This document shows, in pieces, positions 237 to 50,709 of a stretch of 50,709 nt of DNA. Numbering within the stretch: the first letter of the stretch is position 1; every line of letters starts with the position of its first letter. This DNA is from Dimorphilus gyrociliatus (Eukaryota > Animalia > Annelida), in NCBI GenBank assembly GCA_904063045.1, contig CAJFCJ010000082.1, positions 1 through 50,709 on the forward strand, written 5' to 3'. The position numbers were made by a program, and so were the translations under genes. The notes below the pieces were generated by a model. The model saw only the letters and a program-made list of their open reading frames with translations, ran no database searches and had not been told where the DNA came from.

Positions 237-1044
237 TTACCAAGTACCAAAATTAATTAAATACCATCCACTTGACAAAACTCGTATCCTTCTATTAAAA
301 AAGATTAAAGAAGCACCTCTTATAGTACCAATTTGTGTAAATGGGATTTCTCCCTGGTCTAAAATACCAGAGTTTCTACCAAAAAAGAATGCATTGTTTC
401 CTTCATGCATAAAACCTGACCAGGATGTTTCTAGTCCATCTTCACTGCTTACAGCCACAGTTTCATATCCAAAGTTTAAGAAAGGTTGAGGAGAAAGAGA
501 TGTTAAAGAAAAGATTCCCGATCTACAAAATGTATCTCTGTAATAAATTTTATCTTGAAACATGCCTACATTAATTCCTATGTTGCTGAAGGATAAGTCG
601 AAATTGGCTGTAATTGATGATGCTGTTGTAGCAGTTATTGAAAGGTAATAAAAACCATGTTTATTAATATTTAACCCATTTGTAGTTGTATTAAATAGAT
701 TTCCAGTGGCATAGTTTACTTTATGCCATGTGACTCTTCCAGTGTTGACTGATGTTGTTCTTGTCAATGATACCATAAATGCTGGATTTTTGTTTAGATT
801 ACACCGAGGATTTGAACATGGTTCTGTTTCAGCTGAATTTCCTTGACATTCCCCTCCACCATTGGATGGTTGAGGATTTGTACAATCACGAATATTTAAT
901 GTTGGAGTAAAATAGTTGCCAATTGGACACTGTTTGAGGCCAGGCAACTCCTTTATAACAAATGTAGTATTGTCTACAATCATTCTTATTTGGGAATGTT
1001 CCATTCTGACCTCCCTCACAACCATCATTTTTAATGTAGCATGG
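237..1044 (-). pseudogene. Exon encoding chitin-binding peritrophin-A (CBM14), half a TSP1 repeat and C1q-like domains; frameshifted, continues beyond the window start
   Basis: After the acceptor cttag| at 1044 the frame reads PCYIKNDGCEGGQNGTFPNKNDCRQYYICYKGVAWPQ. A +1 shift near 934 continues QCPIGNYFTPTLNI (CBM14 cysteine pattern), then runs into RDCTNPQPSNGGGECQGNSAETEPC (TSP1 C-terminal half). C1q-like strands follow: PAFMVSL, FNTTTNG, HGFYYLSITA, TSWSGFM, SGWYLINF. Confidence 0.6.
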
Positions 1045-1046
1045 CT

Positions 1047-1673
1047 AAGAAGGTGGACTATCAAAACAAAAAAACGAAGAAAAAATCTTGAAGACCTGCC
1101 GAGATCTGGTCATCCAAAGAGGCTAAGAAAGAGACTAAAAAGGACAAGGGCTGGGAAACAGATTACTTTACAAAATGATAATGCCAGACCCCAAGACCCC
1201 ATACCAGTCTGTACACAACTGATTTCATCAGAAATTAGGGATGGTCTGTCTGTCCCCATCCCCCATACAGCCCTGATTTGGCCCCATCTGATTTTTGCCT
1301 GTTTGGATGACTGAAAGATCATATCAAGGGAAATGATTACAGTGAGCTAAAAAAAAGACATTAGGGAATTTTTGAGGAGAAAACCATCCTCCTTTTATTG
1401 GAACAGGATAGATCTACTTCCATCCAAATGGCAGACATGCATAAACAATTGGGGGGGGACTATTAACGAATAAAACAGTTAATTTTTATAGAATAGACTA
1501 TAGGCTATTACAAAAAAAAATATTACAATAAGTTACATCTAAGGCTCATATACAGGCCCAGAAGCAAAAATGAAGGCCAAATTTCCTATTTCTTGGTGCC
1601 ATTGAATTCTCTTGTAAACAAAATTTTTGTTCTTAGGCCAAATGCTACATGTTTGAGGGTGAACTGTTCTGAC
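1047..1673 (+). mobile_element. Tc1/mariner transposon remnant, copy 1, internally deleted
   Basis: RRW...NLEDLPRSGHPK joins directly to RLRKRLKRTRAGKQITLQNDNARP, followed by HPPYSPDLAPSD-like DNA (catccccatacagccctgatttggccccatctgat). It shares about 500 bp of 3' sequence with 31000-31517. Confidence 0.85.
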
Positions 1674-2662
1674 AACTAAAATTCCAATCTTTTATTTTTC
1701 AGTTTATTTCTAGAGAAATAATAATGAAGATTATAAGTCTTTTTTTTAATTTTTTCATTTTGTAATGGCTTGACAGAACTGAATGAAAGTTTACAGATTA
1801 AGTAACATATTTGGAAAGTATCAATAGTATTAGTTAAGGCATTTTAAAATGACAGCAAAGTGTATGATACTTTTTGATTGTACCTAATATTTTGAAGTTG
1901 ATGATATTCTATCACACAACACAATCAAAATATTTACTTTTCTTGTTTAAAGAGATTTTATCCAAAAAATATAACAAATATCTGAATTAAAGCCTATTGT
2001 TTAAAGTTTGTTGTATTTTATGTAAACGTTAGGCTTTTTAATCATTTGAAAATATTTCAATAGAACTCAATGTAATTATTTTACCAGTTCCAAGATATTT
2101 GTTCACCTTAAAGATAATCTAAAGAGAGAGAAGGTTGTCAGTATATTGAAGTATTGGAGAATAGTTTTACTTGAAAGTATCCTCTAGATTGAAATTGGAT
2201 TATTGTACAAAAGGGTTTATTCGCAATAATAATACTTAAGCAAGTAGTAATATGAGAGTTCAATAGCAGAGTAGATAGTTCGTAATAGCAGGTTGCCAAA
2301 TTACCAAACTGTCTTCCAATGTTGAGGAGTAGATGGATGGTTCCAGTGGAGGTTGTTTCCAGGTTATCTTCCCAGGTCCTTGGGTCCAGATGGAAGCTGC
2401 AGAATGAGAATAGTGAGGATTTATATACTTTGAGGTTTGCCTCTGACATCCAATCATCACTTTACAGTTGCCAAAATGTGTAGTTCATATTTCTCTTTAG
2501 TAACAGATCCAACATTTAGGAAGTTCTGTCTTATCAATCTCTATCTATAAATTGTTTTTTAATTGTAATGTAAAGTATTTGATCAGAATATATCTTCTTG
2601 AAGATGTTCATTGTACTTGATAAAGATATCTACAAAATTACTATACACAAATATACATTTAC

Positions 2663-4660
2663 TCAGAAATGAATAATGTCAATATATGAGCAATTTATAA
2701 GTAACTTTTTCAACATAATAGCCTGTTGTTCATTTAAATTACAGTTTGTAATATCAACTTCTTGTAATGTATTTGAAGAAGATTGCAAAGCTTCAAAGAT
2801 TTTTATAATTCCTTTACCCATTGATTTATTCCATGATAACTTGATGTTGACTATACATGAACACTTTTCAAGTAATTTTGCCAAAGCAGAAGTCTGTTCT
2901 TCTGTTAAATTACAATTAGTGACATCCACATTTTGCAATGTATCTGAAGAAGTTTGTAATCCTTGAAAAATTTCTACTAGTGCTTTACCCATTGATCTGT
3001 TCCATGACAAATTAATGTTAACTAAATTTGAACACTTTTTAAGCAATTTTGCCAAAGAAAAACCTTGTTCTTCATTTAAATTACAAAGTATGACATCAAG
3101 TTTTCGTAATGTAAATGTAGAAGATTGTAACTCATCAAATATTTTTACAATTCCTTCACCCATACAAACATTTTCTGACAAATGAATTGTGTCTATATAA
3201 GAACACTTTCCAAGTAATTTTGCCAAAGAAATAGCCTGTTGTTCATTTAAATTACAATAACCAAAATCAATTTTTTTCAATTTGCATGAAGAAGATTGCA
3301 ATCCTTTGAATAATTTTATAATTCCTTTACTCATACAAACATTTTCTGACAAATGAATTGTATCTATATATGAACATTTTCCAAGTAGCTTTGCCAAAGA
3401 TATGGCCTCTTGTTCATTTAAATTACAACTAGTGACATCAACTTTTTTCAATGTATTTGAGGAACTTTGTAATCCATCAAATATTTCTTCTAATCCTTTT
3501 CCCATGAAAATATTACCTGACAAAGCAATAATATCAATATAGGAACAGTTTTTAAGTAATTTTGCCAAAGAATTAGCTTGTTGTTCATTTAAATTACAGT
3601 TTGTAATATCAACTTCTTGTAATGTATATGAAGAAGATTGTAAAGCTTCAAAGATTTTTATAATTCCTCTACCCATAGATTTATTTAATGACACATTGAT
3701 GTTGACTATATATGAACACTTTTTAAGTAGCTTTGCCAAAGAAATAGCTTGTTGTTCATTTAAATTGCAGTAGGAAAAATCAACTCTTTTCAATACAGCT
3801 GAACACATCTGTAATCCTTCAAGTACTCTGACAACTGTATTATTCATATATGGATTTTGTGACAAATTGATGCTAACTAGATGTGAACACTTTATAAGTA
3901 ACTTTGCAAAAGAAAATGACTGTTTTTCATTTAAATTACAGTTAGTGACATTGACATTTTGCAGTTTGTCTGAAGAATGTTGCAATTTTTCATATATTTC
4001 TGAAAGTGCTTTACCAATATTTGGATTGTGTGACATATTGATGTTGATAAAATTTGAACAGTGTTCAAGTAATTTTGCCAAAGAAAAAGCCCATTCTTCA
4101 TTTAAATTACAGTTAGTAATATCAAGTTTTTGCAATGTCTCTGAAGAAATTTGTAATCCTTCAAAAACTTCTACAATTGCCTCACCCATATTTCTGTTAT
4201 GTGACAAGTCAATGTAGACTAAGTTTGAACAATTACTGATTAATCTTCCCAAAGAAATGGTCTGCTCTGCATTTAAATTACATTGACTAAGACAGATTTG
4301 CTGTAATACATTTGAAGAAGATTGTAAACTTTGAAATATTTCTGAAACTGCTCTACCCATGCATGGATTCTCTGACAAATTGATATAGACTAAATGAGAA
4401 CAATCACTAATTAATTTTCCAAAGGCTGAGGCCTGTTTTTCATTTAAAGCACAATTTTTTACATCTATCTCCTGCAAAGTGTTGGAAGAAGTTTTCATTC
4501 CGAAACAAACAACTTCAAATCCATCTTTCATAAGTTTGTTGTTTGATAAATTAAGTTTGGTGAAATTATCAAATTGTTCCAAGACAAATGCCAAAGACTC
4601 TGCTTGGACTCCTGTTAAGTTGCATGATTCAACATTTATACCTTGTAAGATTGGACAAGA
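2663..4660 (-). repeat. Coding tandem array of about 171-bp units (57 aa, alternating 28+29 aa ribonuclease-inhibitor-type LRRs)
   Basis: Recurring LqxvDitnCnLneqQaxsLakLLxxCsxixxIxLSxNxxMgxgixxIfxxLqsSsxt. DNA matches occur at a 171-bp offset (3161 vs 3332) and an 855-bp offset (2725 vs 3580). Confidence 0.9.
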
Positions 4661-7441
4661 TCTAGGATTTATCTCTTTAAGAATTGTTTGTAAATTACTA
4701 TCCATAATTATGATTTTTGTTAAATTAATGTCAACCAAAGAAGGCATTTGTTTTATTGTTTTAATTAGATGACCCAAATCAGCATCACTTTTTATATTAA
4801 GGTCACTCAGATTTAATGCTTTGATGGATATAAAAAGTTCCTTGTTAGCTCTAATGAATTTGTCAATGATAGTTTTGCAATTGGAATAACATCCAACTAA
4901 GTTTAGAGAATCAATTTCCAAAAAATCATTTTTTATTAACCAACTGCTTAATAAAGAAAATACTTCCTTTGAAAGCAAGTTTTTCAAGAGACAAAACCAC
5001 ACTACTCTATTTTTGTTGTTGTAGTATTTAATAGTTAGAAGGTTTGCACTATTCACTTCAAAAGACAAAAAGTCTTTGGCACACTCTTCTTCATGTTTTC
5101 TTTGTTCAGATAATGTATGAACACATTGATTTGTCATTAATTTATGATAATCATTCAAAAAATGATGATCTATGTTGCTTATTTCACAATTATAAATTTC
5201 AAAATGTTTGAATCGTCTGTTTTGAAGTTTATCTTTTATCATTGTAAAGAAATTATCTCTACCTTCCACCTCAAATTTCTTATTTGCAATAACCAATTTT
5301 CTTAATTGAACTAAAGATTTGATGAATTGAAATTTCCATTTTGTAAAATAATTCTTTAAATTGAATGATTCATCAACAAACTCAGTGATGTATTTAGAAG
5401 AATAATTAATTGTAATTTGAGTATAATAGCCAAATAAATTGCCTGAAATATTTACAATGCAATTATCTTTGTGACATTTGCTGTTGTCTTTCACAGTAAT
5501 AAATTTATTTCCAATACATATTTTTTCAATATCTGTAAAAATTATTAAATGTAAAAGATCCTCTAATAAATAATCTTCTTTAACTAGGTCATTGTTGACA
5601 AAAAACAATTGACCTTTTAACCTTAAATATTTCAATTTTGTACAATATTCACAACAACAGGCAATTAATTGTTTTAAATTTACTGATGACTCAGCGAAAA
5701 AGATGTTTTTTAAATTTTTACCAAACTTATTAAAAATGATGTTAAGAGTATCATTATTTATAATTTCATCATGTATTTGCAATGTATTATCATTTTCTAA
5801 ACCATTTTCCAGCAGTTTCTTTATTTTATTACTAAAATTGAACATTTTTCTTGCAATTTCAGAATAAAGAAGAATTTTTTCAAAGAAAACTAAAGAATTT
5901 TGTTTAACAAACTCCATTACATTAAAAATATTAACATTATTTAATGTTTCAAAAAGTTTATTAATGTCATTTTTAAATGGTGTGAAGAGGTTAAATTGTA
6001 AATTTACTTTTCCATTTTTCCCCTCAATTCTACCAATTAGAAATTTAGCTGCAAAAAACTCTTGAAATGACAAATGATAAAATTGTACTTCAACTCTATC
6101 CATTTCTAAATGAATAATTTGAATTAGACCTTTAAAATTTATCCTAAGAAATTCAATTTTCTTTTCATCATTTTTTAAAATAATTTTACATTCTGATAGA
6201 TTTGTAAGGCAAAGTTGATAAAATGATTCAAGTTTATAATTGCTACTAATTCCAATACATCCACCATGTTTTTCTTGTATTATAGTAATTAAATCTTGAT
6301 AAATTTGATAAAGACTTTTATCATAGATAGAATCTCCTTTTTCCTTCCATACATGGAATAGTATCATAGCTAATAATGGAATATTGCATAGACTTTCTAT
6401 TTTTCTATTTCTATTGACAACTTTTTACAAAAATTCTAAACTCTTTTCAATATCTCCATCATTGAAGCATTTTTGAAAAAATGATTGCATTTGAGTAGTA
6501 TTCCATCCAGTTAATTCAAATGATATATCGCATTTGCATTTTAATTCTTTAGCTCTCCATTTACGAGACCATATTACAGTTTGAATATTACAATGTGGAT
6601 TTTCTAAAAGATTATAGAGAGGATGATCTTTTTGATAGAATTCATCAGCTCCATCGAGAAAAAGGACAACATCATCTCTCTTTTCATTAAATATTGATTC
6701 CACTATATTTTCAGTTATATAGGGAATATTTCGAAAATTTTGATCAATTATTTCTTCATAGATGCTTGTATCATTTCTAACTTTCCTTAATATGATGAAT
6801 AAGCATAATTTTTGAGAATTGACATTCCATTGCTCATTGGCCCATTTGTAAAGTAGATATTTAACGTGTACACTTTTTCCCATACCAGGTTCTCCTTGTA
6901 TTAAAATCTTTTTAAATCCTTTATAAAATATTTTATAAAAGTTTTCATAATCAAATTCTGTTTCTAGCAATTTAGAATCAATTATATCTATATTTTGTAC
7001 TTCAGATATTTCAATAGATGTTACAATATCAGAAATTTTAACTTCCGTTTTAGTAAAAGGAAGTAATGGAATTGTTGTAAATTCTTGTTTTCTTTGTATT
7101 TTACAATCCGAAATCAAGATCTGCCATATTGCTTTTGTATTTGATAAACATAAAGCTAATTTATCACAATGTTCAATTTGAATATCAAAGAGAATTGTGC
7201 AAATTTCCTTAAAATCTAGCAGGCATATTATGTTTAAAATTGAAGAAATTGCTAAATGTCTCTCCTCATAGTCATATTGTTTTTGAAGTGTACATTTCCT
7301 ATCATTATTTAATCTCCCCAATGATTCTAGTTTTATAGAAAATCTATCAAAGTTTAATTGATCTTCCAGTAATCTTTTAATATCATCTTTGAAGTAGTTA
7401 ATGCTTAATTTTTGTTCCGATGTCAGTGTATTTAAATTCAT
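2663..7441 (-). pseudogene. NLR-family receptor (death-fold-like N-terminus, NACHT, RI-type LRRs), single exon, interrupted by one in-frame TAA at 6425-6427
   Basis: Walker A ILIQGEPGMGKS (about 6873-6900), Walker B VVLFLDGADEF, LCNIPLLAMIL across the gap between the two listed ORFs, winged-helix FYHLSFQEFFAAKFL, then about 12 double LRR units. The two ORFs are in the same frame, separated by TAA plus 19 sense codons. Confidence 0.85.
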
Positions 7442-7899
7442 ATTTCCTTGTAAAAATTATTGTCGAGATGTAGTTAAATGGAAGCCAATTTGGTAGACTA
7501 AAGCATTTAGCTTATTTATATGGCCTACTATAATGTCTGATTCAATATAACAATGTGGTGTAGTCCTATCACCTTAACATTTATAGTATAAATCTAAAAA
7601 AAAAGGAAGTGTACTTTGTTGTATTGTAATTTTTAGCTTTTATTTATATTAAAATCTTGACAATGAGATCATTGTTTAAAATTATCTTAAAATCTACCTT
7701 TTTTCTGTTAGAACCAAAAGCTCCATCTAGTGAGAAATTTTTCTGCCTTTTGCTTTTAAGAGGCACTGGTTAACTGATTCTTTTTGGTGGGATTGTCTGT
7801 TCAATTTTTGAATAAGTTTTTTTGTTTTTTTTACCAAAATTATCTCTTTTTATCAAAACGTTAAAAAAAATAATTCTATTTTAATCTTTTTCTACAGAA

Positions 7900-8450
7900 A
7901 ATGTTGAAATGGCGAATGAGTTCAAAGAGAAAATATTTGTGATAATCAAAGAGATTGCTTTAATCAATTTGATGAAAAGTGCAAAAACTTTTTGATTCAA
8001 TATCCAATGAAAATAAAGAGAGTATAAAAACAATAAATTATTCATCTCTCTTTTGATAAAAACCATTCTGTTTTCTGTTCCATAAATAGAATGTAATTAG
8101 AAATACCAAAAAGATTGTGACACTTATTGTATACCAAATCAATTTGTTGATGATTTCAAATATGATTGTATTACTAAAAAATGATGAAACTGAACATAAT
8201 AGTTTAGAAACTCTAATCAAATCTAAGAAAAAATGAAGAATCATTTTTGCAGTGCCAAATATTCTCTACTGACAATCAATTCAATGAAAGAATATTTCAA
8301 GTGTAGTGATGAGAATAAACACTAGCTCATCAGTAAAGAATGCATTAAGGGCAGCAATGAAATATATTGCAAATTGCCTTGATTGTCCAATCCACACTGC
8401 AGAATTATCAATCATCTACGTCTGCAAAGCAATTTCAAGGAAAAGAGTAG
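7900..8450 (-). pseudogene. Degenerate 7TM GPCR fragment, probably LGR type (TM3-TM5 region)
   Basis: DNSAVWIGQSRQFAIYFIAALNAFFTDELVFILITTLE resembles the LGR TM3 pattern (W..S..C...G.L..FS.ELS.F.LT.ITLE). Hydrophobic stretches with stops follow. Confidence 0.35.
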
Positions 8451-10249
8451 ATTTGAAAATAGAACAATTGAGGAAGGATTCAAGAAAATTTCAATAACCT
8501 AAAGTAGGTAAACTCTTTTTAACTATGCCCAGTTACATCAATCCCTTTACAAATGCCTCTCTTAACATCTGTTTTCATCATTGAATTAGTGACCTTCACC
8601 TTTCAATGCATATATAGCTATTAAAGATGTTAGAGAAGTATATGATAGTGGAGACATAGTACTTGGCATATTATCATTCCTAAAAACTGATGTCATCCAT
8701 GCAACTATTTTTCAACAGATATTTTTTCATTTCAAATAAATGCTTTATTCAGAATAAGATACTTAAGCTAATGATTTATATGAAATTTTAAAATCAGGGT
8801 AGTCTAATGGCTAATATAGAGGACAGAGAAAGCCTTATTCCAATTGATATTGTTTCCATATAGCTGTCATTTAAGCACTACTCTTGAGTTTGTCTCCAAC
8901 ATCCAATCATCATTTTCAAGTTCAAGAACTGTCTAGTTGATATTTATGTTTAGCAAGATGATGTCACAATGTCAAATGGTCAAAGGCTAATTATATTATC
9001 TTAAGCATATTTTAAGCAGTTTCATACCAGTTTTCTAAAAAAAAACAAACAAAAAGAAATTGTATAAATAATAATTAAAACGAAACAAATAGAAATCTTA
9101 CATTCAACTTGAAAGTTTATTGTTCGACTATTAAAACGCAGAGCAGGTTTTGGCTTAGTTCTAATTAATACCACTTGACAATAGGTTTCTTATGTGTAAT
9201 AGATTATTCTTTGTTCATTCATCCAAATAGAACATGCCAATCAGGCATTACTATCTCTTTCCAGCCATCTATTTCTTTACTCTATCACTCTCTCTAATCT
9301 TCTATTTGTACCTATAACTAATTTTTGAATACTTACCTTTTCAACAGCTTTCTATAAAGAACTCTTTCAATTTTTCATAAGGTTTTCAGAAATTTGAAAA
9401 TCTACCAATGAAAGTTCCTGGTCATTTAGTGAAGCTCTCGCGGAACTAAATACTTACACATTTTTTGATAGGGTCATGTGATCGTATTGTATGCCAAAAA
9501 AAACGTTTCATTAAAACTCTAAAATTGTGTGATGGAGTCAATTAAATACTATCATATAAATATATAAATGTAATTTTCTAGGAAAGCTGACAACAAAATA
9601 TCATAGGATAATGCTCTAGGATTTTTGCTTGTCAGCATAATTGAGATAATCATTGCAAATTGCTGTTGTAGTTATTTAATGTCAATGACATAAGCAGGTT
9701 GGGATCAACAGAAAATGTCAGTCTTTTAATCATCTCTTTGATTATATTGAATTTTTGCAGGGATTGTTATATTTTTTATGTTTGACAAAAATTTTCTGCA
9801 GAATTTTTAATCAAACTGAATTGGCCTCCCTAATTCTGGTCTATTTATCAATTAGTTGTGAGAACAAAACATTGTGTTGAGGCCTGTCACTACATTATTA
9901 GACTATTATGACCTATTTAATTTTTGATTAAATGGTATGGTTGCCAATATTTCCTCATTGTTTAAGATGTTTATTGCCTTTTTAAAAGTGTATATGCATG
10001 TGCCATAGAAACATGAATACTTTTTGCTTATCTATAATTGAGAATTTGAGAAAGCTATTGTTATATTGTATCAAAAGACTGAAAAAAGGGTACAATTGCC
10101 AAAGTGTTCATACAAAAATATTTTCCAAGTACACTGCATTCTCTGTCAATATTCAAGCTTATTATTTATTATCAAAATATGTCTTTTATGGGAAGGTCAG
10201 CCAAGCATTGATGAACATGTTGTTCTGAAATAGTTATAAATTTAATTCT

Positions 10250-16019: not shown

Positions 16020-19000
16020 CTAAAAAGAACTATACAACCTTCTCTCTCTAAACTTTTTCTTATAACTGAAATATTCATTAATCACAAACAGAAACGGATT
16101 TAAAATTGAATTTAACGGCAACAAAAGCGAAATGATCAAACTCATTTGACGATTACTCATTTCAATATCATAGAAGAGAGATGATATTCCTTTATAAAGA
16201 AAAAACAATTGCAAAATATCTTTTTGTTTTGTTTTGTTTTGATTTTTTTTACCTAAAATCGAAAAAACTATCCAAACAGTAACATTTGAAACTGTAATAA
16301 GTACAATACTAGTTTTTAACTTTTTCCCTTTATCGCTCTTTTGGCGATTGTTTAATATTTTAAATGATATTCTAATAGTTCTCGTAATATTTATATATAA
16401 AAGACCAATAATTAAACTTATACATGGTGAAAATATACTGAAAAGTGTGAACGATACTATCCAATCACTCGCTCTTTCTTTCCTCATATGAACATAAAAA
16501 CAGATTGGAGTATGATTGTAAATTATCTACAGGTGAAGGTGATGAGTTAATCCGTTAATCCTCCTAATTCGCTTACTAACCGGATTATAGGCTAATGGGA
16601 TTACCGATAGAATCAGGCAAAAGATTATTGCTGAAGGAATAAGGACAATGGCGTATTTTTGAAAAATTGATTTGTCAAATGGGCTAACAACAGCCTGGTG
16701 TCTCTCCAATGTAATGAGTAGTGTACTAATAGATGATAATACCAGTGAAAATGTCATAAATGTACCTAACATTTGGCAAAGTGAGCCGTTTCTCCAAGTG
16801 TCGTCATTCTCCAGATAGGAATTTGAAAAGTACATATCCACAATACCAATGATAAGAATATAGAGAGATATGCAAGAATCGCCAAATCTCATTAGTAATT
16901 GATAATATTTAAGCTCTTTAGAAAATTTGATATTGATAATAAATGATAACAGATTTCCAAATACACCAACAATTCCAAAAAACCAAAAGATAAATCTTAT
17001 CAAATTTGAACTTAGTAATCTATCGCAATTGAAAAATGCTTGTACAGATGGCGAACAGTCAACGTGTTTTCCAATAGTCTTCCATACTAGACAGCAAAAC
17101 TGGAATTTATCCCCAAAAATCCTCTTAATCCTTACTAAACCTACTAGACTATTCCTTAATTGTAATAATACAATATAAGATTTGTTTATGTAAAGATATT
17201 CAAGATTATTTAAATATTTAAATGATTGCACTTCAATGATTTGTATTTTACATTTAGAAATTTTGAAAGTGTTCAAGCGTTTCAAACTTTTGAAATAACT
17301 CTTTCTAATAATTGTTATATTTGTATAGGAAATGTCCAAATATCTTAAATTTCTACTAGAATTCATGTATTGTAGACCAACAATGTAATTGTGAGATATG
17401 TCAAGGTATTGTAAAAGGGTCAAGGACGAATTCAAACTGATAGCATTTTCCTCTGTACTTGCATTGCGAAGTGTTAAATTGAGTAGATTTGGGAAAAAGT
17501 TTAAAGAGAAATGAGAAGGATTTTCATCATTTTCAATATGCAAAGAGAACAAATGAATTGCTGTAGAGTTGTAACCAATTGGCATTGCGCCAAAAATTGT
17601 TATTTTCTTGAAAATACTTAAATAATTCATAGGCTTTTTAACAATTAAATTTGCGGTAAATTTGCAGTAAATTTCATCAATCGAAATAACATTACAATAT
17701 TCGTAATCATTCGTAATTTGGCTTAATGAACAGAGAAGTTCATCACTTCCCCAATTGCAGTCAACAATACCATTGCAAACATTTGTTACGGGGATAAAAC
17801 GATTTTGATTTCTGCATTTGAAATGTTGTTTTGGTAAGAAATTTTCTAAATGAAAAATGATTATAGATGATAAATTCTCTCTCTCTCTCTTTACAAACCG
17901 CAGTCACTCTCATCATCACCAAAGTAACAGTCACGAATACCGTCGCATATCTGTTGAATTAAAATGCAATAGTTTTCTCTATAACAAAGGTATTGGCTTG
18001 AAGGACAAGTTGTCCTAATACAAGAGGAATTTATCAAGAATAAATCAGTCAATGGAAGATTTAACGAGGTTTTATGAAAATAGCAAGAGCTCTTATTAGG
18101 CTGAAACGCTTTCCTCACTTCGCTTTCCTCATTTTGACAGTCAACTTTTCCATCATCCTTGGTTTGAATGGGTAAACATATATCGCGACATTTAAATTGA
18201 AAATTGCTGTTGCAACCTATAAATATAAACTTTTGGATTAGGATTATCTCGTCCTTACTCATCTCCATAACCTGTTTGATATTTTTTTAATAAAGATCCC
18301 CTTTGAAGACAAATTTCATCACTTTCGTCAAAACAATTTTTCTCATTATCGCATATTTTATAAGAATTGACGCATTGTTTGTTTTTACACTCTCTATATG
18401 TAAGAGAGAAAAAGGAGTGAGTAGTTTTAAAAATATAAACTGGTAATAAAAAACAGGTGAACTAACGTAAAATTTCCAAAACAGTCTTCTCTCTCTGCAG
18501 ATAGATAGATTTTCATTTGTTTAAACAGATGATATATATATTTGAAAACTACTCAACTGCAATAATACTCGTCAGAATTATCCGAACAGTCTTGTTGAAA
18601 ATTACAAACTTTCAAATAGTTGATTGATTGATTTATATTGAAACATTGAAAATTAAATATATTTTTCGAATTGCATTCTTCTTCATCCTCGTTCGTTACG
18701 CAATCGTTAACTCCATCACAAACGTACGCCATATTCACATAAATACGACTTTTATAACAAAAATACAAGTTTGAATGCTTGCTTGAATTTTTTAAATGAA
18801 CAATTTCCAAATTGTAATTGATTTTAATGTCTAAAAAAGAAGAAACAAATTTTTTTTTAGTTTTAATTTTCATATTTTTCCTTTTTGTTAATTTTTTTTT
18901 ACAAACTTTGAAATTTTTGACAAACAACAAAATAGTTGAATATTTTAAAACAATTTATAATTTTATGTTTTAAATTTTGATAGAAATTCTGTCTGGAAAA

Positions 19001-46753: not shown

Positions 46754-47518
46754 TCAATATATTTTCCTGTCTGAGGGAAAGAAAAAATAATCTTTACAAT
46801 TTGTTCCACTTGTTATTGGTATTTGCTGGAATTCACAGTTTTCTTCTGATTCTCTCATGAAGTATTTTATGTAGATTTCAACATTTCTTAAAGTTCTTTT
46901 TTTACTATTTTGCAGGAATAACATTGAAAACATAAATGCTCTTATAAAAATACTTCCTTTATCTGTTCTCCAAGCCGCTCTATCTGGTATTGTTGAGTTT
47001 AAATGGAATATATCAACTAAGTTGGATGACTTTTCCGAAGATGAGGACAGGGTTATGAAATTTTCATTTGAAGAATTGCTTTTGCCTGAAAGTTAGATAT
47101 TTTAAAGCTAAATTAAAGAGAAAAACAACTATATACCTCGACAACATTGAGTTAAAAAGATTTTAGGTTTATCCTTTAAACAATCCATACTGAATTTCTC
47201 ATACAATTTATCAAATGACATCATATTGTCATCAATTTCAGTCAATGATCTTAATTTAAAACTATCATCACTTCCGTGTGCTAAAATGCAGACAATAACA
47301 GATTTTATTTCATTTTCTTCTTTTGATATTTTTTCCTCGAGATCAGCTATTTTGTCACATAAAGCCAATTTTGTACAATTATACCACTCTTCACTGTTGT
47401 AGTTCAAGCTACTAATCATTGATCTTAGATTTTTCAAATCTGTATTTGTTCCCAATTCTCTATTCTCCAACATTGCAATGATGATAACCATGTTCCTGCC
47501 TCTGGTGTCATATAGTTC
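46754..47518 (-). CDS. Caspase catalytic domain (p20 exon 47137-47518, p10 exon 46754-47085) of the fusion gene
   Basis: Catalytic His codon at 47276-47278 and catalytic Cys codon at 47141-47143; S1-pocket Gln (QCCRG) and Arg (AWR) are present. Confidence 0.92.
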
Positions 47519-50500
47519 CTGTGATAAAAAATCAATAAATCCTCATCATCTCTAGTGGATAGTATGATTTCCCTCACAATTGAGGCCAACAGTGAATTGT
47601 ACTCGAAATGAGACACTGTTGTTGAGATAAAATGGCAATATACCCTAATAACTTACTTCATTATCAATCTTAGCAATCAAATTGCTATTAGTCAAAAATT
47701 TTTGGTCAACAGGCTGAAGAGGAAAACTGTAAAGTGATTCTGAAAATAAAAAATAACATGAACTAGAGTCTGGGAGAAAATGGCCCATGTTTTCATTCTC
47801 TACCCTAACCCACAAACTACCCAGCTTCTTGCCCTTTATTCTTTCTAACCCTCAGCTCAGCCTTGAATGAACTTAAAAAGAGCTAAATTAAAATTTTCCC
47901 AACCTTGGAAATGTCCCAAAAATATTAAACTAAACTTTACTTGGTCTTTCTCTCCCTAACCAAAAAAAACTAACCCTGCTCTGTGAAAAAGTTCACAAAT
48001 GTTTTAGGACTTAATTCAATATCCTTATTATTCTCATTACTCTCAAGGCAATAGTAAAGAAAGTCATCACTCCACAATCGTTTTTCTTCAGATTCTGATT
48101 CTAAATAGAATTCCAAACTGGATCTAAAATTATTGATATTTGATATTTCTCTTTTAAACCTTAAAAAGCATTTTGCATCTGAAAATTATTGCATTAACTT
48201 TATATATTTGTTAAACATCAATTGTTTATTCATTTATTAAACTTACTGTTTTCAAATTTGTTAATTAAATCTTTAATGCTTGTTGTTATAGTATCCTGAA
48301 CAATGTCATTAGATTTTAATTCACAAAATAAACGAGTTTCAGAAATATTGTCTTTGAATTTTATCTTAAATCCACCATTTATTAATGAAACATTGCCTTT
48401 CTAAAATTATAATCTTTTTATTGAATAGTATGTTGTGTAATATATTTTTCATACCTGTTTTACTTCTAAATCTTTTCCTAGCTTGTAATAAATATATAAA
48501 TAATATTTATCTATTTCCTTTTCTAAATTTATATAATATGTCAGCCACACTTCATCACCTTTTTTCAACTTTTCCTCTATACCAGCATTGCAAAAGTGGT
48601 CAATTCTCATTTTAACTTTATTAAAAGAATATTCCAAAATGTTTACATTATCTGTTGTCTGAATTTTGTTCATAAAGTCAGTTTTGGAATTGTAATGCAA
48701 TATTGTGGTCATTTCCAGAGTTGGTTTATTATTTCCATGAAAGGTGACATTTTCAGGTTCACACAAAATAAAATTATGAAATAAAATTTCCTTTCCACTG
48801 TCATTCAAATTAACATTTTGTCTTATTGAAATGACTGTTATTTCATCAAAACTTTTCATTGGAAAAGACAATTTAGCATTGTCAATTTTTAAATCTATCT
48901 CTTTTCCAGTCCAGATCCAAGTGTCATATATTTTCTGATTATGTCTAAATCTGCTCTGTGGTTCAAATGAAAAATTCTCTTCATTCTTTCTTATACCATT
49001 GAGATTAAATTGTAGTGATATATTCAATTCATGATCAAGGTCTTCAACCAAGAAATTATCTTTAAAAACAAATCCTTTTAGTGTAAAGAATGTATTGAAT
49101 TTATTTTTGGATAAATTTAATTCTTTTCTTTTAATTATAAATTCAACTTCAGTATCTGGTTGTAAAGTTGGCTTTAACTTTTCCAAAAATATAATGTGTG
49201 ATGCAGAATTAATGCATTTAATATCTGATGTTATCAACAATTCAATTTGATTTACATTTTTGAAAGATTTTAATATTCTTAAACATAAGAAAAGAAAAGT
49301 TGGTTTATCTGATTGCTTTATAGGCCAATACCATTTTTTTGCGGTGTTTGCATATAAATCACTTGTTAACCTATCAGCTTCTATTAAGAAGTTACTACTT
49401 AAATCCCAATGAATGCCTAAATTATGTTTAAAGTATGGAATAGTTATCCAACCAATTTTTTTAGTATGTTTTAATGTGCTAAAAAACCTGACAGAAGTTT
49501 TCATTACTTCAATGCAAATGAAGCAATCTTTTGTTATAGCATTTTCTTTCAAAACCAAATTTAAACCAACAAAAGTTTTAATTATTCTATCACTCTTCCT
49601 TAAATGAAGATATATTATCATTGAAGAATTAGACCAAATTACAAGTGGGTAAGCTCCTGTTCCTAATTTGCAGACATTATCATCCATAAACACTTTTCTA
49701 TTAATGTCATTAAAATAATCAATTGCTGTAGAAATTAAAAAAAATGACAATCAAAATTTACTAAACTTTCATTGAGAATTATATATTATACATTTTTTAC
49801 TAATCAAACAAAATAAATGAAAAAAATCATAGATACCTTTAGAGTCAAAGTATTTATACATTTTGTAAAGTATATTAAAATCTTCACTTGGTTTTGGACA
49901 ATCTTTTGTTGACCTAACAAATGAGATTGATCTACAACAAAAATGTTGCTTCATTAAATTCTTTATAACAGCTTTCCTATTATCAAATTCATATGTATTG
50001 TTAATGTTAAGTTTCGTCACTAAAAACTGTAAATGGATATTATGTCCCAGATCAAAATGGTCATTACCATTAAATGAAAATTCAAACAACCAAATTGAAT
50101 TCTTTTTGAAAAATTCATTCATATTTTTGAATATTGAATTTACATCACACAATTCAAACTTATTCCCTTGGAGGTTCACTATCTCAAGATTAGGGTTGCT
50201 CTTCATTGCATCAATAACTAAAATTCCAACTTCATGACTGAATGAACATTGAGGGAAATATAAGACTCTTAATTTCAAACAATTTCTCTTAATACTCTGA
50301 AATATATCTTTGGCCATACGTGATCCAAAACTATTGAATCCTAGGTATAATTCTTCCAGATTTGAATTAAAACCAATAACTTGATCACTTGATGATTCGT
50401 TATCTTTAAAAGAACAGTTTGAAAAATTTAGTACTTTTAATGAAAGACAGTGATACTGAAGATTTATAAATAATAAATTCCCAACAGTGGAACCAAAACT

Positions 50501-50709
50501 ATTATTAGATAATGATAATTCTTCAATATATGAACTTTTTCGAATTGCATCACCAACAATATCACCAATACTTTCATCAAAACCACAATTTGATAAATTC
50601 AAAATTCTTAAATTAGAATAACTTTGAGAAATACTGTCAAAAATTCTTTGACCAACTTTTGAACCAAATTTATTGTCTTGTAAATATAATTCTTGAAGAT
50701 ATGAACTTT
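46754..50709 (-). CDS. LRR - ZU5/UPA (FIIND/PIDD-like) - caspase fusion protein, 5'-partial. Exons: >50709-49837, 49725-48455, 48400-48247, 48178-47975, 47739-47657, 47518-47137, 47085-46754
   Basis: All six introns are GT-AG and the splice phases match (1,0,1,1,0,1), giving about 1,098 codons without a stop up to TGA at 46754. RI-type LRRs (LQELYLQDNKFG, LEELYLGFNSFG); ZU5-like AKLSFPMKSF..ITVISI..FILCEPENVTF..IDHFC; caspase p20 ILAHG and KPKIFLTQCCRG; p10 DIF..STIPDRAAWRTDKGSIFI..QIP..KDYFFFP. Confidence 0.85.

Follow-up and report, generated by a model that had tools for sequence, protein, structure and literature searches.

The window considered here, a stretch of 50,709 nucleotides (nt) from the annelid Dimorphilus gyrociliatus (contig CAJFCJ010000082.1 of assembly GCA_904063045.1), carries at its upper end, on the minus strand, a gene in which leucine-rich repeats (LRRs) are joined to a caspase by a middle region of 570 amino acids, which is predicted to consist of ZU5- and UPA-like domains. 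The spliced model is composed of seven minus-strand exons (50707-49837, 49725-48455, 48400-48247, 48178-47975, 47739-47657, 47518-47137, and 47085-46754). Joined, they amount to 3297 nt, that is, 1098 codons without an internal stop, and the phases agree across the six junctions. The introns are GT..AG throughout, the stop codon TGA is located at 46754-46756, and the gene region is AT-rich (24-35% G+C). At the window edge (50709) the reading frame is still open. The parts of the gene are as follows.

49837..50709, minus strand: exon 1 as seen, LRRs of the ribonuclease inhibitor (RI)/NLR type and a C-terminal extension of ~90 amino acids (Pfam; donor 49837 in transcripts)
48455..49725, minus strand: exon 2 (amino acids 291-714), predicted ZU5-like, UPA-like, and second ZU5 domains, with the strands that immediately follow the putative cleavage site (AlphaFold model)
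49334..49651, minus strand: predicted ZU5-like beta-sandwich of module 1, exon-2 residues 25-130 (model residues 21-260 align to the FIIND of CARD8/NLRP1)
48959..49297, minus strand: predicted UPA-like beta-sandwich of module 1, exon-2 residues 143-255 (structure matches)
48593..48934, minus strand: predicted ZU5 of module 2, exon-2 residues 264-377, spliced amino acids 555-668 (model, structure matches)
48590..48598, minus strand: His667-Phe668-Cys669 (cac ttt tgc), candidate site of autoproteolysis, which would cut between Phe and Cys (15-sequence alignment)
48247..48400, minus strand: exon 3 (amino acids 715-765), part of the beta-rich region after the site, candidate UPA (transcript junctions; alignable with relatives)
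47975..48178, minus strand: exon 4 (amino acids 766-833), candidate UPA end, with a conserved F-x-x-F motif terminally (transcripts; family alignment)
47740..47974, minus strand: intron 4, 235 nt, mostly spliced, retained in a minority (transcript depths in X1 and X3, see below)
47657..47739, minus strand: exon 5 (amino acids 834-861), short linker preceding the caspase (transcript junctions)
47137..47518, minus strand: exon 6 (amino acids 862-988), large-subunit part of the caspase with His942 (47276-47278) and Cys987 of QCCRG (47141-47143) (Pfam; caspase-3 alignment)
46754..47085, minus strand: exon 7 (amino acids 989-1098 and TGA), inter-subunit linker and small-subunit part of the caspase, AAWR...GSIFIRAF (Pfam; junction 47137/47085)

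Transcripts, Repeats, and Caspase

Transcript evidence comes from two independent public runs, X1 (2017) and X3 (2020), to which the DNA run X2 is added. All six junctions (49837/49725, 48455/48400, 48247/48178, 47975/47739, 47657/47518, and 47137/47085) are found exactly in intron-less contigs of X1 and X3. A spliced contig of 2350 nt leads from the LRR exon into exon 4, another one of 1318 nt holds exons 5-7 together with the 3′ untranslated region, and the two are tied together by the exon 4/5 joint (47739/47975), which is covered at a depth of 232.8 in X1 and 49.2 in X3. In X2, one contig runs collinear with the window. The first-pass annotation of this DNA had read seven exons as a single reading frame out of disconnected open reading frames (ORFs). 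This is confirmed at the level of one spliced transcript, and the four junctions which it had singled out for verification on RNA (49837/49725, 48455/48400, 47657/47518, and 47137/47085) were each recovered to the nucleotide. Because the intron-less contigs show all six junctions, they speak against transcripts of separate genes. The encoded protein has no entry in the protein libraries searched, and the gene thus seems to be unannotated.

Two details of the transcript sets touch on the caspase part. Intron 4 is present in an unspliced contig (47711-48004) at a depth of 76.2 versus 232.8 for the spliced form in X1, and of 21.1 versus 49.2 in X3. Its retention brings a stop directly after exon 4 (...FFTEQG*) and would, consequently, yield an LRR-ZU5 product devoid of the caspase; such transcripts may represent a regulatory isoform or simply unprocessed pre-mRNA. 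Further, the k-mer depth in X1 of the 3′ contig (exons 5-7) is about twice that of the 5′ contig (316.6 versus 153), for which reason an additional transcript that begins within intron 4 or downstream of it and contains the caspase alone is possible. In X3, a further GT..AG intron of 58 nt (50238-50295) is seen inside the LRR exon at a depth of 19 versus ~36-46; it would shift the frame and represents a minor or aberrant form.

The RI-type LRRs first read from exon 1 are matched by the Pfam families LRR_1 (7.9e-11), LRR_6 (8.9e-8), and LRR_4 (2.1e-7). They are 31-38% identical to the LRRs of P0002, an annotated protein of D. gyrociliatus described below, which follow the NACHT domain of the gene at locus L009. 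Between 50448 and 50709, every run shows a 4- to 30-fold higher k-mer depth, and several positions are variant. The LRR units of this edge are thus common to many other loci or transcripts, which suggests a large paralogous LRR family.

At the other end of the protein, Peptidase_C14 is matched by exon 6 (2.7e-12, profile positions 20-128) and by exon 7 (7e-4, profile positions 152-231); the splice site, therefore, lies within the domain, and the two halves are complementary. When compared with the p17 subunit of caspase-3 by phmmer (E 3e-5), QCCR pairs with QACR, and AHG stands opposite SHGE. The catalytic dyad is present in the form of His942 of AHG and Cys987 of QCCRG, the second residue of this pentapeptide being Cys and not Ala. 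As read from the sequence, Arg881 (NRELGT), Gln985, and Arg1028 (AAWR) occupy the positions expected for motifs of an Asp P1 pocket, and the only Asp of the inter-subunit linker is that of NLVD1013. A phmmer search of exon 7 against PDB sequences returned no match by which the small subunit could be anchored. With Peptidase_C14 extending over exons 6 and 7 and both catalytic residues in place, the caspase is intact, as had been proposed.

The ZU5/UPA-Like Region and the Putative Cleavage Site

When 1.84 billion representatives were searched exhaustively by HMMER with the middle region, only 14 relatives emerged, the best match being 28% identical. In the family alignment, the members are 19-31% identical to exon 2 of the window. 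P0002 (DgyrCDS14372) and P0004 are annotated proteins of D. gyrociliatus, while the other relatives are ORFs on AT-rich sample contigs. A word-indexed protein search with the family alignment yielded only P0007, already a known relative, and one with residues 235-745 of P0004 yielded only the query and one DED-caspase.

On the middle region of the window protein, Pfam finds no family even at E <=1, and phmmer of exon 2 against PDB sequences finds no match. The AlphaFold (AF2) model of exon 2, built with the family relatives as alignment, is all-beta, with a predicted local distance difference test (pLDDT) score of 82.8 and a predicted template modeling (pTM) score of 0.82. Its structure matches are the ankyrin ZU5-ZU5-UPA, the FIIND of CARD8 and NLRP1, UNC5b, and single ZU5 domains. 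By Foldseek against the AlphaFold DB, FIIND and NLRP1-like clusters are matched, and the reviewed proteins matching at a probability of ~1.0 include SH3BP4, MACC1, many NLRP1s, and UNC-5. Pfam ZU5 matches are obtained in four of the 15 family ZU5 segments (best 9.5e-6), and the best PDB match of the family profile is the ZO-1 ZU5 signature (E 0.0077). As modeled, the layout is [ZU5-UPA-like] - [ZU5 ending H667-F668/C669] - beta-rich region - caspase. The degenerate first ZU5-UPA, which the first-pass annotation had only suspected, is thus borne out by structure, in that module 1 aligns to the CARD8/NLRP1 FIIND; the clear ZU5 ending in HFC stands on the model, the structure matches, and the Pfam hits in the four relatives. 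Of the profile matches which that annotation had expected, LRR and C14 were delivered by Pfam, ZU5 and UPA in the window protein were not, and ZU5 was recovered by structure. At the boundary of module 1, the 15-sequence family alignment contains no conserved F-[SC], and the model supports a reading of module 1 as a non-cleaving ZU5-UPA-like module. By hhalign, there is no detectable similarity between modules 1 and 2, either of ZU5 to ZU5 or of UPA to candidate UPA; this test, hence, says nothing about an internal duplication.

The motif HFC is found exactly at the end of the ZU5 of module 2. PIDD1 cuts itself at HF/S, and NLRP1 and CARD8 cut themselves at SF/S (the slash marks the scissile bond). 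In the family alignment, the Phe of the site is invariant (15/15) and constitutes one of only three invariant columns; columns with at most two residue types number 14 among the 296 well-filled ones. The residue following the Phe is Ser in nine sequences and Cys in six, and nothing else occurs. The individual motifs are HFS and HFC (five each), GFS (two), NFS, SFC, and KFS (one each). Ser and Cys being the only two possible nucleophiles, this restriction is what a functional acyl-shift site predicts, and the exclusive exchange between them is the strongest indirect sign of bond cleavage.

From Cys669 to the first strand of the caspase, about 200 residues are available, which show a beta-type hydrophobic pattern and can be aligned with the relatives; the family alignment of these exons was assembled from hand-trimmed approximate exon pieces of the relatives. 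Of this stretch, the exon 2 model includes the three strands next to the site, and the structural alignment with UNC5b reaches residue 414. In exons 3, 4, and 5 of the window, Pfam detects no family at E <=1, UPA included, and between site and caspase of P0002 and P0004 it likewise detects no domain and no UPA. In an AF2 model of residues 235-530 of the paralogue P0004, confidence is confined to the ZU5 and two or three strands that follow it, the region after the site falling below a pLDDT of 50. A language-model search with the equivalent part of P0002 leaned weakly to the UPA, FIIND, and UNC5 families, while an ESM-Atlas feature search with exon 4 gave only chance-like EF-hand matches. From the modeled strands, the region is a candidate UPA: of the UPA-like region claimed initially, the first strands and their alignment to UNC5b stand, whereas no Pfam UPA was found and the remainder is modeled without confidence in P0004.

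The supposed absence of a death-fold adaptor layer from the window protein is indeed what is found. No such domain is matched by Pfam in exons 3-5, and a UPA of ~150 residues plus a death fold of ~90 residues would exceed the ~200 residues available. Nor is there a C-terminal death domain of the PIDD1 type by Pfam at E <=1; the protein ends in the caspase.

Family Architecture and Interpretation

The linkage of middle region and caspase extends beyond the window. Downstream of the middle region, a Peptidase_C14 ORF is located on the same strand on every sample contig that is long enough (L001, L005, L006, and L008), and the linkage is kept in these four loci as well as in P0002 and P0004. Both His and Cys are present in six of seven family caspases, among them P0004 and four sample-contig loci. 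In P0004 (859 amino acids), the middle region carries HFS, and the caspase is intact, its pentapeptide being NCCRG. P0002 (1962 amino acids) is composed of LRRs, the middle region, and a caspase without His and Cys, in which, at residues ~1800-1860, ADG replaces [SA]HG and FQVHNQ is found at the position of the active-site Cys, the fold being kept. In L008, the ZU5 region is separated from the ORF of the catalytic caspase by a further ORF (2237-2614). On visual inspection, this ORF looks like the beginning of a caspase large subunit in which the catalytic motifs are missing, and it may be a pseudo-caspase domain preceding the real one.

Upstream of the middle region, NACHT domains are encountered. 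In L003/L004, a 767-amino acid ORF with a NACHT match (27.7 bits, cut-off 26.7) directly precedes it. At the P0002 locus of D. gyrociliatus, L009, a 696-amino acid ORF (7676-9766) with NACHT (E 2.5e-13) and LRR_6 ends just upstream of the P0002 start, in the same frame and separated from it by a single stop. As this sole intervening stop sits within a plausible GT..AG intron of 84 nt (9684-9767), the public P0002 model is probably truncated N-terminally. Upstream of P0004, there is no long ORF. With NACHT preceding the middle region in L003/L004 and L009 and no long ORF doing so at P0004, the family comprises NLRP1-like forms (NACHT-LRR-FIIND-like) and CARD8-like forms (FIIND-like only), each ending in a caspase. 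Identity of the window with L009 was considered and is ruled out, blastn giving no match and protein identity being ~23%; the G+C contents are 29.5% (L009) and 28.8% (window).

With a probability of roughly 0.6, the sequence, with its minimum of 1098 codons, is regarded as the 3′ portion of an expressed gene for an NLRP1/CARD8-like innate immune sensor in which a caspase in cis replaces the CARD. Its product appears to be a danger sensor that carries its own death protease, with no recruitment through adaptor domains. The mechanism envisaged, plausible by analogy, would build on the architecture, the expression, and the site conservation documented above. The protein would cleave itself between Phe668 and Cys669 by an N-to-S acyl shift, both fragments remaining associated noncovalently. 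Binding of a ligand, or pathogen-driven destruction of the LRR (probably together with a NACHT) part, would then free the 50.6-kDa fragment 669-1098, which would oligomerize via its UPA-like region and so bring the caspase domains together. These would dimerize, corresponding to proximity-induced activation, process the linker at NLVD1013, and cut downstream death substrates; a CARD, DD, DED, or PYD adaptor step would not be required. An extension of this reading to dinophilid annelids at large is put forward tentatively, being somewhat less probable than its converse. They would possess one-protein inflammasomes of the type NACHT-LRR-[ZU5-UPA]-[ZU5/UPA]-caspase along with a sensor-less CARD8-like form, in which self-cleavage at Ser or Cys licenses a self-activating UPA-caspase fragment that is freed by N-terminal degradation or by a ligand.

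Every testable part of the first-pass interpretation held and is in this sense supported, while cutting at HF/C, a true UPA after the site, and caspase activation by release and oligomerization are proposed by analogy. Several points weigh against the sensor reading. At HF/C, it is conservation that is observed, and cleavage is inferred from it; the His at -2 occurs in 10 of the 15 sequences only, and self-cleavage is absent from the ZU5-UPA modules of ankyrin and UNC5. After the site, no UPA is found by Pfam, the P0004 model is confident for two or three strands only, and the language-model lead to UPA/FIIND is weak. Judged by sequence, the caspase pentapeptide is QCCRG rather than QACxG, and not all members of the family are proteases, since P0002 has lost both catalytic residues. 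A NACHT upstream of the window gene itself, as suspected in the first-pass annotation, is supported by two relatives (L003, L009) but is a candidate only, the 5′ end lying outside the window.

Some of these points would be accommodated by a cis-caspase NLR without self-cleavage, in which the ZU5-UPA part serves as a rigid spacer or autoinhibitory clamp and oligomerization of NACHT-LRR activates the caspase in the manner of Apaf-1 or NLRC4. The best structural matches do include the non-cleaving ZU5-UPA of ankyrin and UNC5b, NACHT is located upstream in two relatives, the His at -2 is not invariant, and the first ZU5-UPA module has no cleavage motif. However, it is hard to explain on purely structural grounds why the Phe never varies and why only Ser or Cys comes after it in 15 of 15 sequences, and P0004, apparently without sensor or NACHT, keeps HFS and an intact caspase, which is a better fit to a CARD8-like protein licensed by cleavage than to one driven by NACHT; this alternative is considered unlikely. 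Less probable still is a lineage-specific family of fast turnover without a sensor-effector role of its own, the gene being a decoy, a regulator, or in decay and its caspase not being activated via the ZU5 module. Such a fate is at odds with 1098 intact codons over seven exons, with correct splicing and good coverage in two independent transcript sets, and with the preservation of the catalytic dyad and P1-pocket residues in the window protein and of His and Cys in six of seven family caspases, while the low identity of the members to exon 2 (only 19-31%), the catalytically void P0002, the caspase-less product of intron retention, and the very small size of the family (14 relatives among 1.84 billion representatives) would agree with it. 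The twofold k-mer depth of the 3′ over the 5′ contig (316.6 versus 153 in X1) is the observation that could be accounted for by an LRR-ZU5 gene wrongly joined to a separate caspase gene or by an assembly artefact; yet the in-frame joint 47739/47975 is covered in both X1 (232.8) and X3 (49.2) with canonical splice sites, the phases fit at six junctions, the same order of parts recurs at six other loci, and the X2 DNA contig is collinear with the window, so that a misjoined pair of genes is highly improbable.

Among well-studied sensors, to our knowledge, self-cleavage with subsequent "functional degradation" is the mode of action of NLRP1 and CARD8 alone. Should the wider reading of a family of one-protein inflammasomes hold, FIIND-based sensing would not be confined to vertebrates and could be coupled to a caspase without the help of death-fold adaptors. 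The sensing principle would be older or more widespread than thought, or would have evolved twice, and the gene would exemplify how animals rewire cell-death signaling without death-fold adaptors. It would also offer a natural minimal system in which UPA-driven oligomerization alone could be tested as caspase activator. With Ser in some members and Cys in others, the site is a natural experiment on the nucleophile. As Pfam does not recognize the module in most members, surveys of domain architecture will have missed it.

Elsewhere in the window, a second NLR-type gene is located on the minus strand (2663-7441), with an ORF (6425-7441) matching NACHT (E 8.9e-13) that is followed by a 1234-amino acid LRR ORF (2663-6367); downstream of it (7441..2663), tblastn revealed no similarity to ZU5 or caspase. 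The next ORF after this gene (237-1064, minus strand, 275 amino acids) matches TSP_1 (E 0.007) and C1q (E 0.017) weakly; it may encode part of a secreted protein with a C1q domain, as one exon of its gene. An ORF with LRR_8 and 7tm_1 (16527-17630, minus strand), located upstream of the NACHT gene, resembles an exon of an LGR-like G protein-coupled receptor (GPCR). In L009, an LDLa-LRR-7tm_1 gene (2394-6516) likewise lies upstream of the NACHT-LRR-ZU5-pseudo-caspase gene, and GPCR gene and NACHT gene may form a duplicated two-gene block.

Comparison with Known Systems

NLRP1 (NACHT-LRR-FIIND-CARD) and CARD8 (FIIND-CARD) are inflammasome sensors. The annelid protein resembles them in that LRRs are followed by a putative ZU5-UPA module of the FIIND type with an F/S-type site at the end of the ZU5, that the effector is located C-terminally to the site and would be freed together with the candidate UPA, and that relatives occur either with NACHT upstream, as in NLRP1, or without a sensor part, as P0004 does in the manner of CARD8. 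It differs in the effector, which is a caspase domain here and a CARD recruiting caspase-1 there, and in the presence of two tandem ZU5-UPA-like modules, the first without a site. The nucleophile is Cys and not Ser, within a motif HF/C (PIDD/Nup98-like) versus SF/S, and the window sequence is too diverged for the FIIND, ZU5, and UPA models of Pfam. In a survey of metazoan NLRs, FIIND-CARD NLRs are reported for humans and fish only (PMC11508797), whereas the present gene is from an annelid. The mechanisms of NLRP1, CARD8, and PIDD1, to which parallels had been drawn in the first-pass annotation, are established (e.g., PMC7794386). Of these parallels, that to NLRP1/CARD8 is the closer one; that to PIDD1 is weakened by the death domain not found and by a different domain order.

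The caspase-2 PIDDosome is built around PIDD1 (LRR-ZU5-ZU5-UPA-DD). LRRs at the N-terminus, tandem domains of the ZU5 type, a motif of the HF/S type, and, presumably, caspase activation as the output are common to both proteins. PIDD1, however, contains no caspase and needs its death domain and RAIDD, while a death domain was not detected in the annelid protein. The LRRs of the latter are of the RI/NLR type, and its relatives possess NACHT, which PIDD1 does not. The order here is ZU5-UPA-ZU5-(UPA?), in contrast to ZU5-ZU5-UPA in PIDD1, and only one of the two ZU5 domains has the site here.

Full-text literature searches revealed no paper describing a fusion of ZU5, UPA, or FIIND with a caspase, and in a survey of lophotrochozoan caspases that covers D. 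gyrociliatus, there is no mention of ZU5 or of LRR. The general idea of a sensor fused to a caspase has already been proposed for amphioxus, in the form of the hybrid "shortcut" genes LRRs-caspase and TNFR-caspase (Zhang et al. 2008, PMC2575513). These genes likewise have a receptor-type domain fused directly to a caspase, by which adaptor hubs are bypassed, and the active-site pentapeptide is kept in the amphioxus caspases; compared by description only, they differ in that no ZU5, UPA, FIIND, or self-cleavage site is described for them. The cDNA-verified list found for that study names only TNFR-caspase and Death-caspase, not LRRs-caspase (PMC2575513). Finally, ankyrin (ZU5-ZU5-UPA-DD) and UNC5 (ZU5-UPA-DD) are non-cleaving scaffolds ending in a death domain, whereas in the annelid family a conserved [H]F[S/C] site is followed by a caspase.

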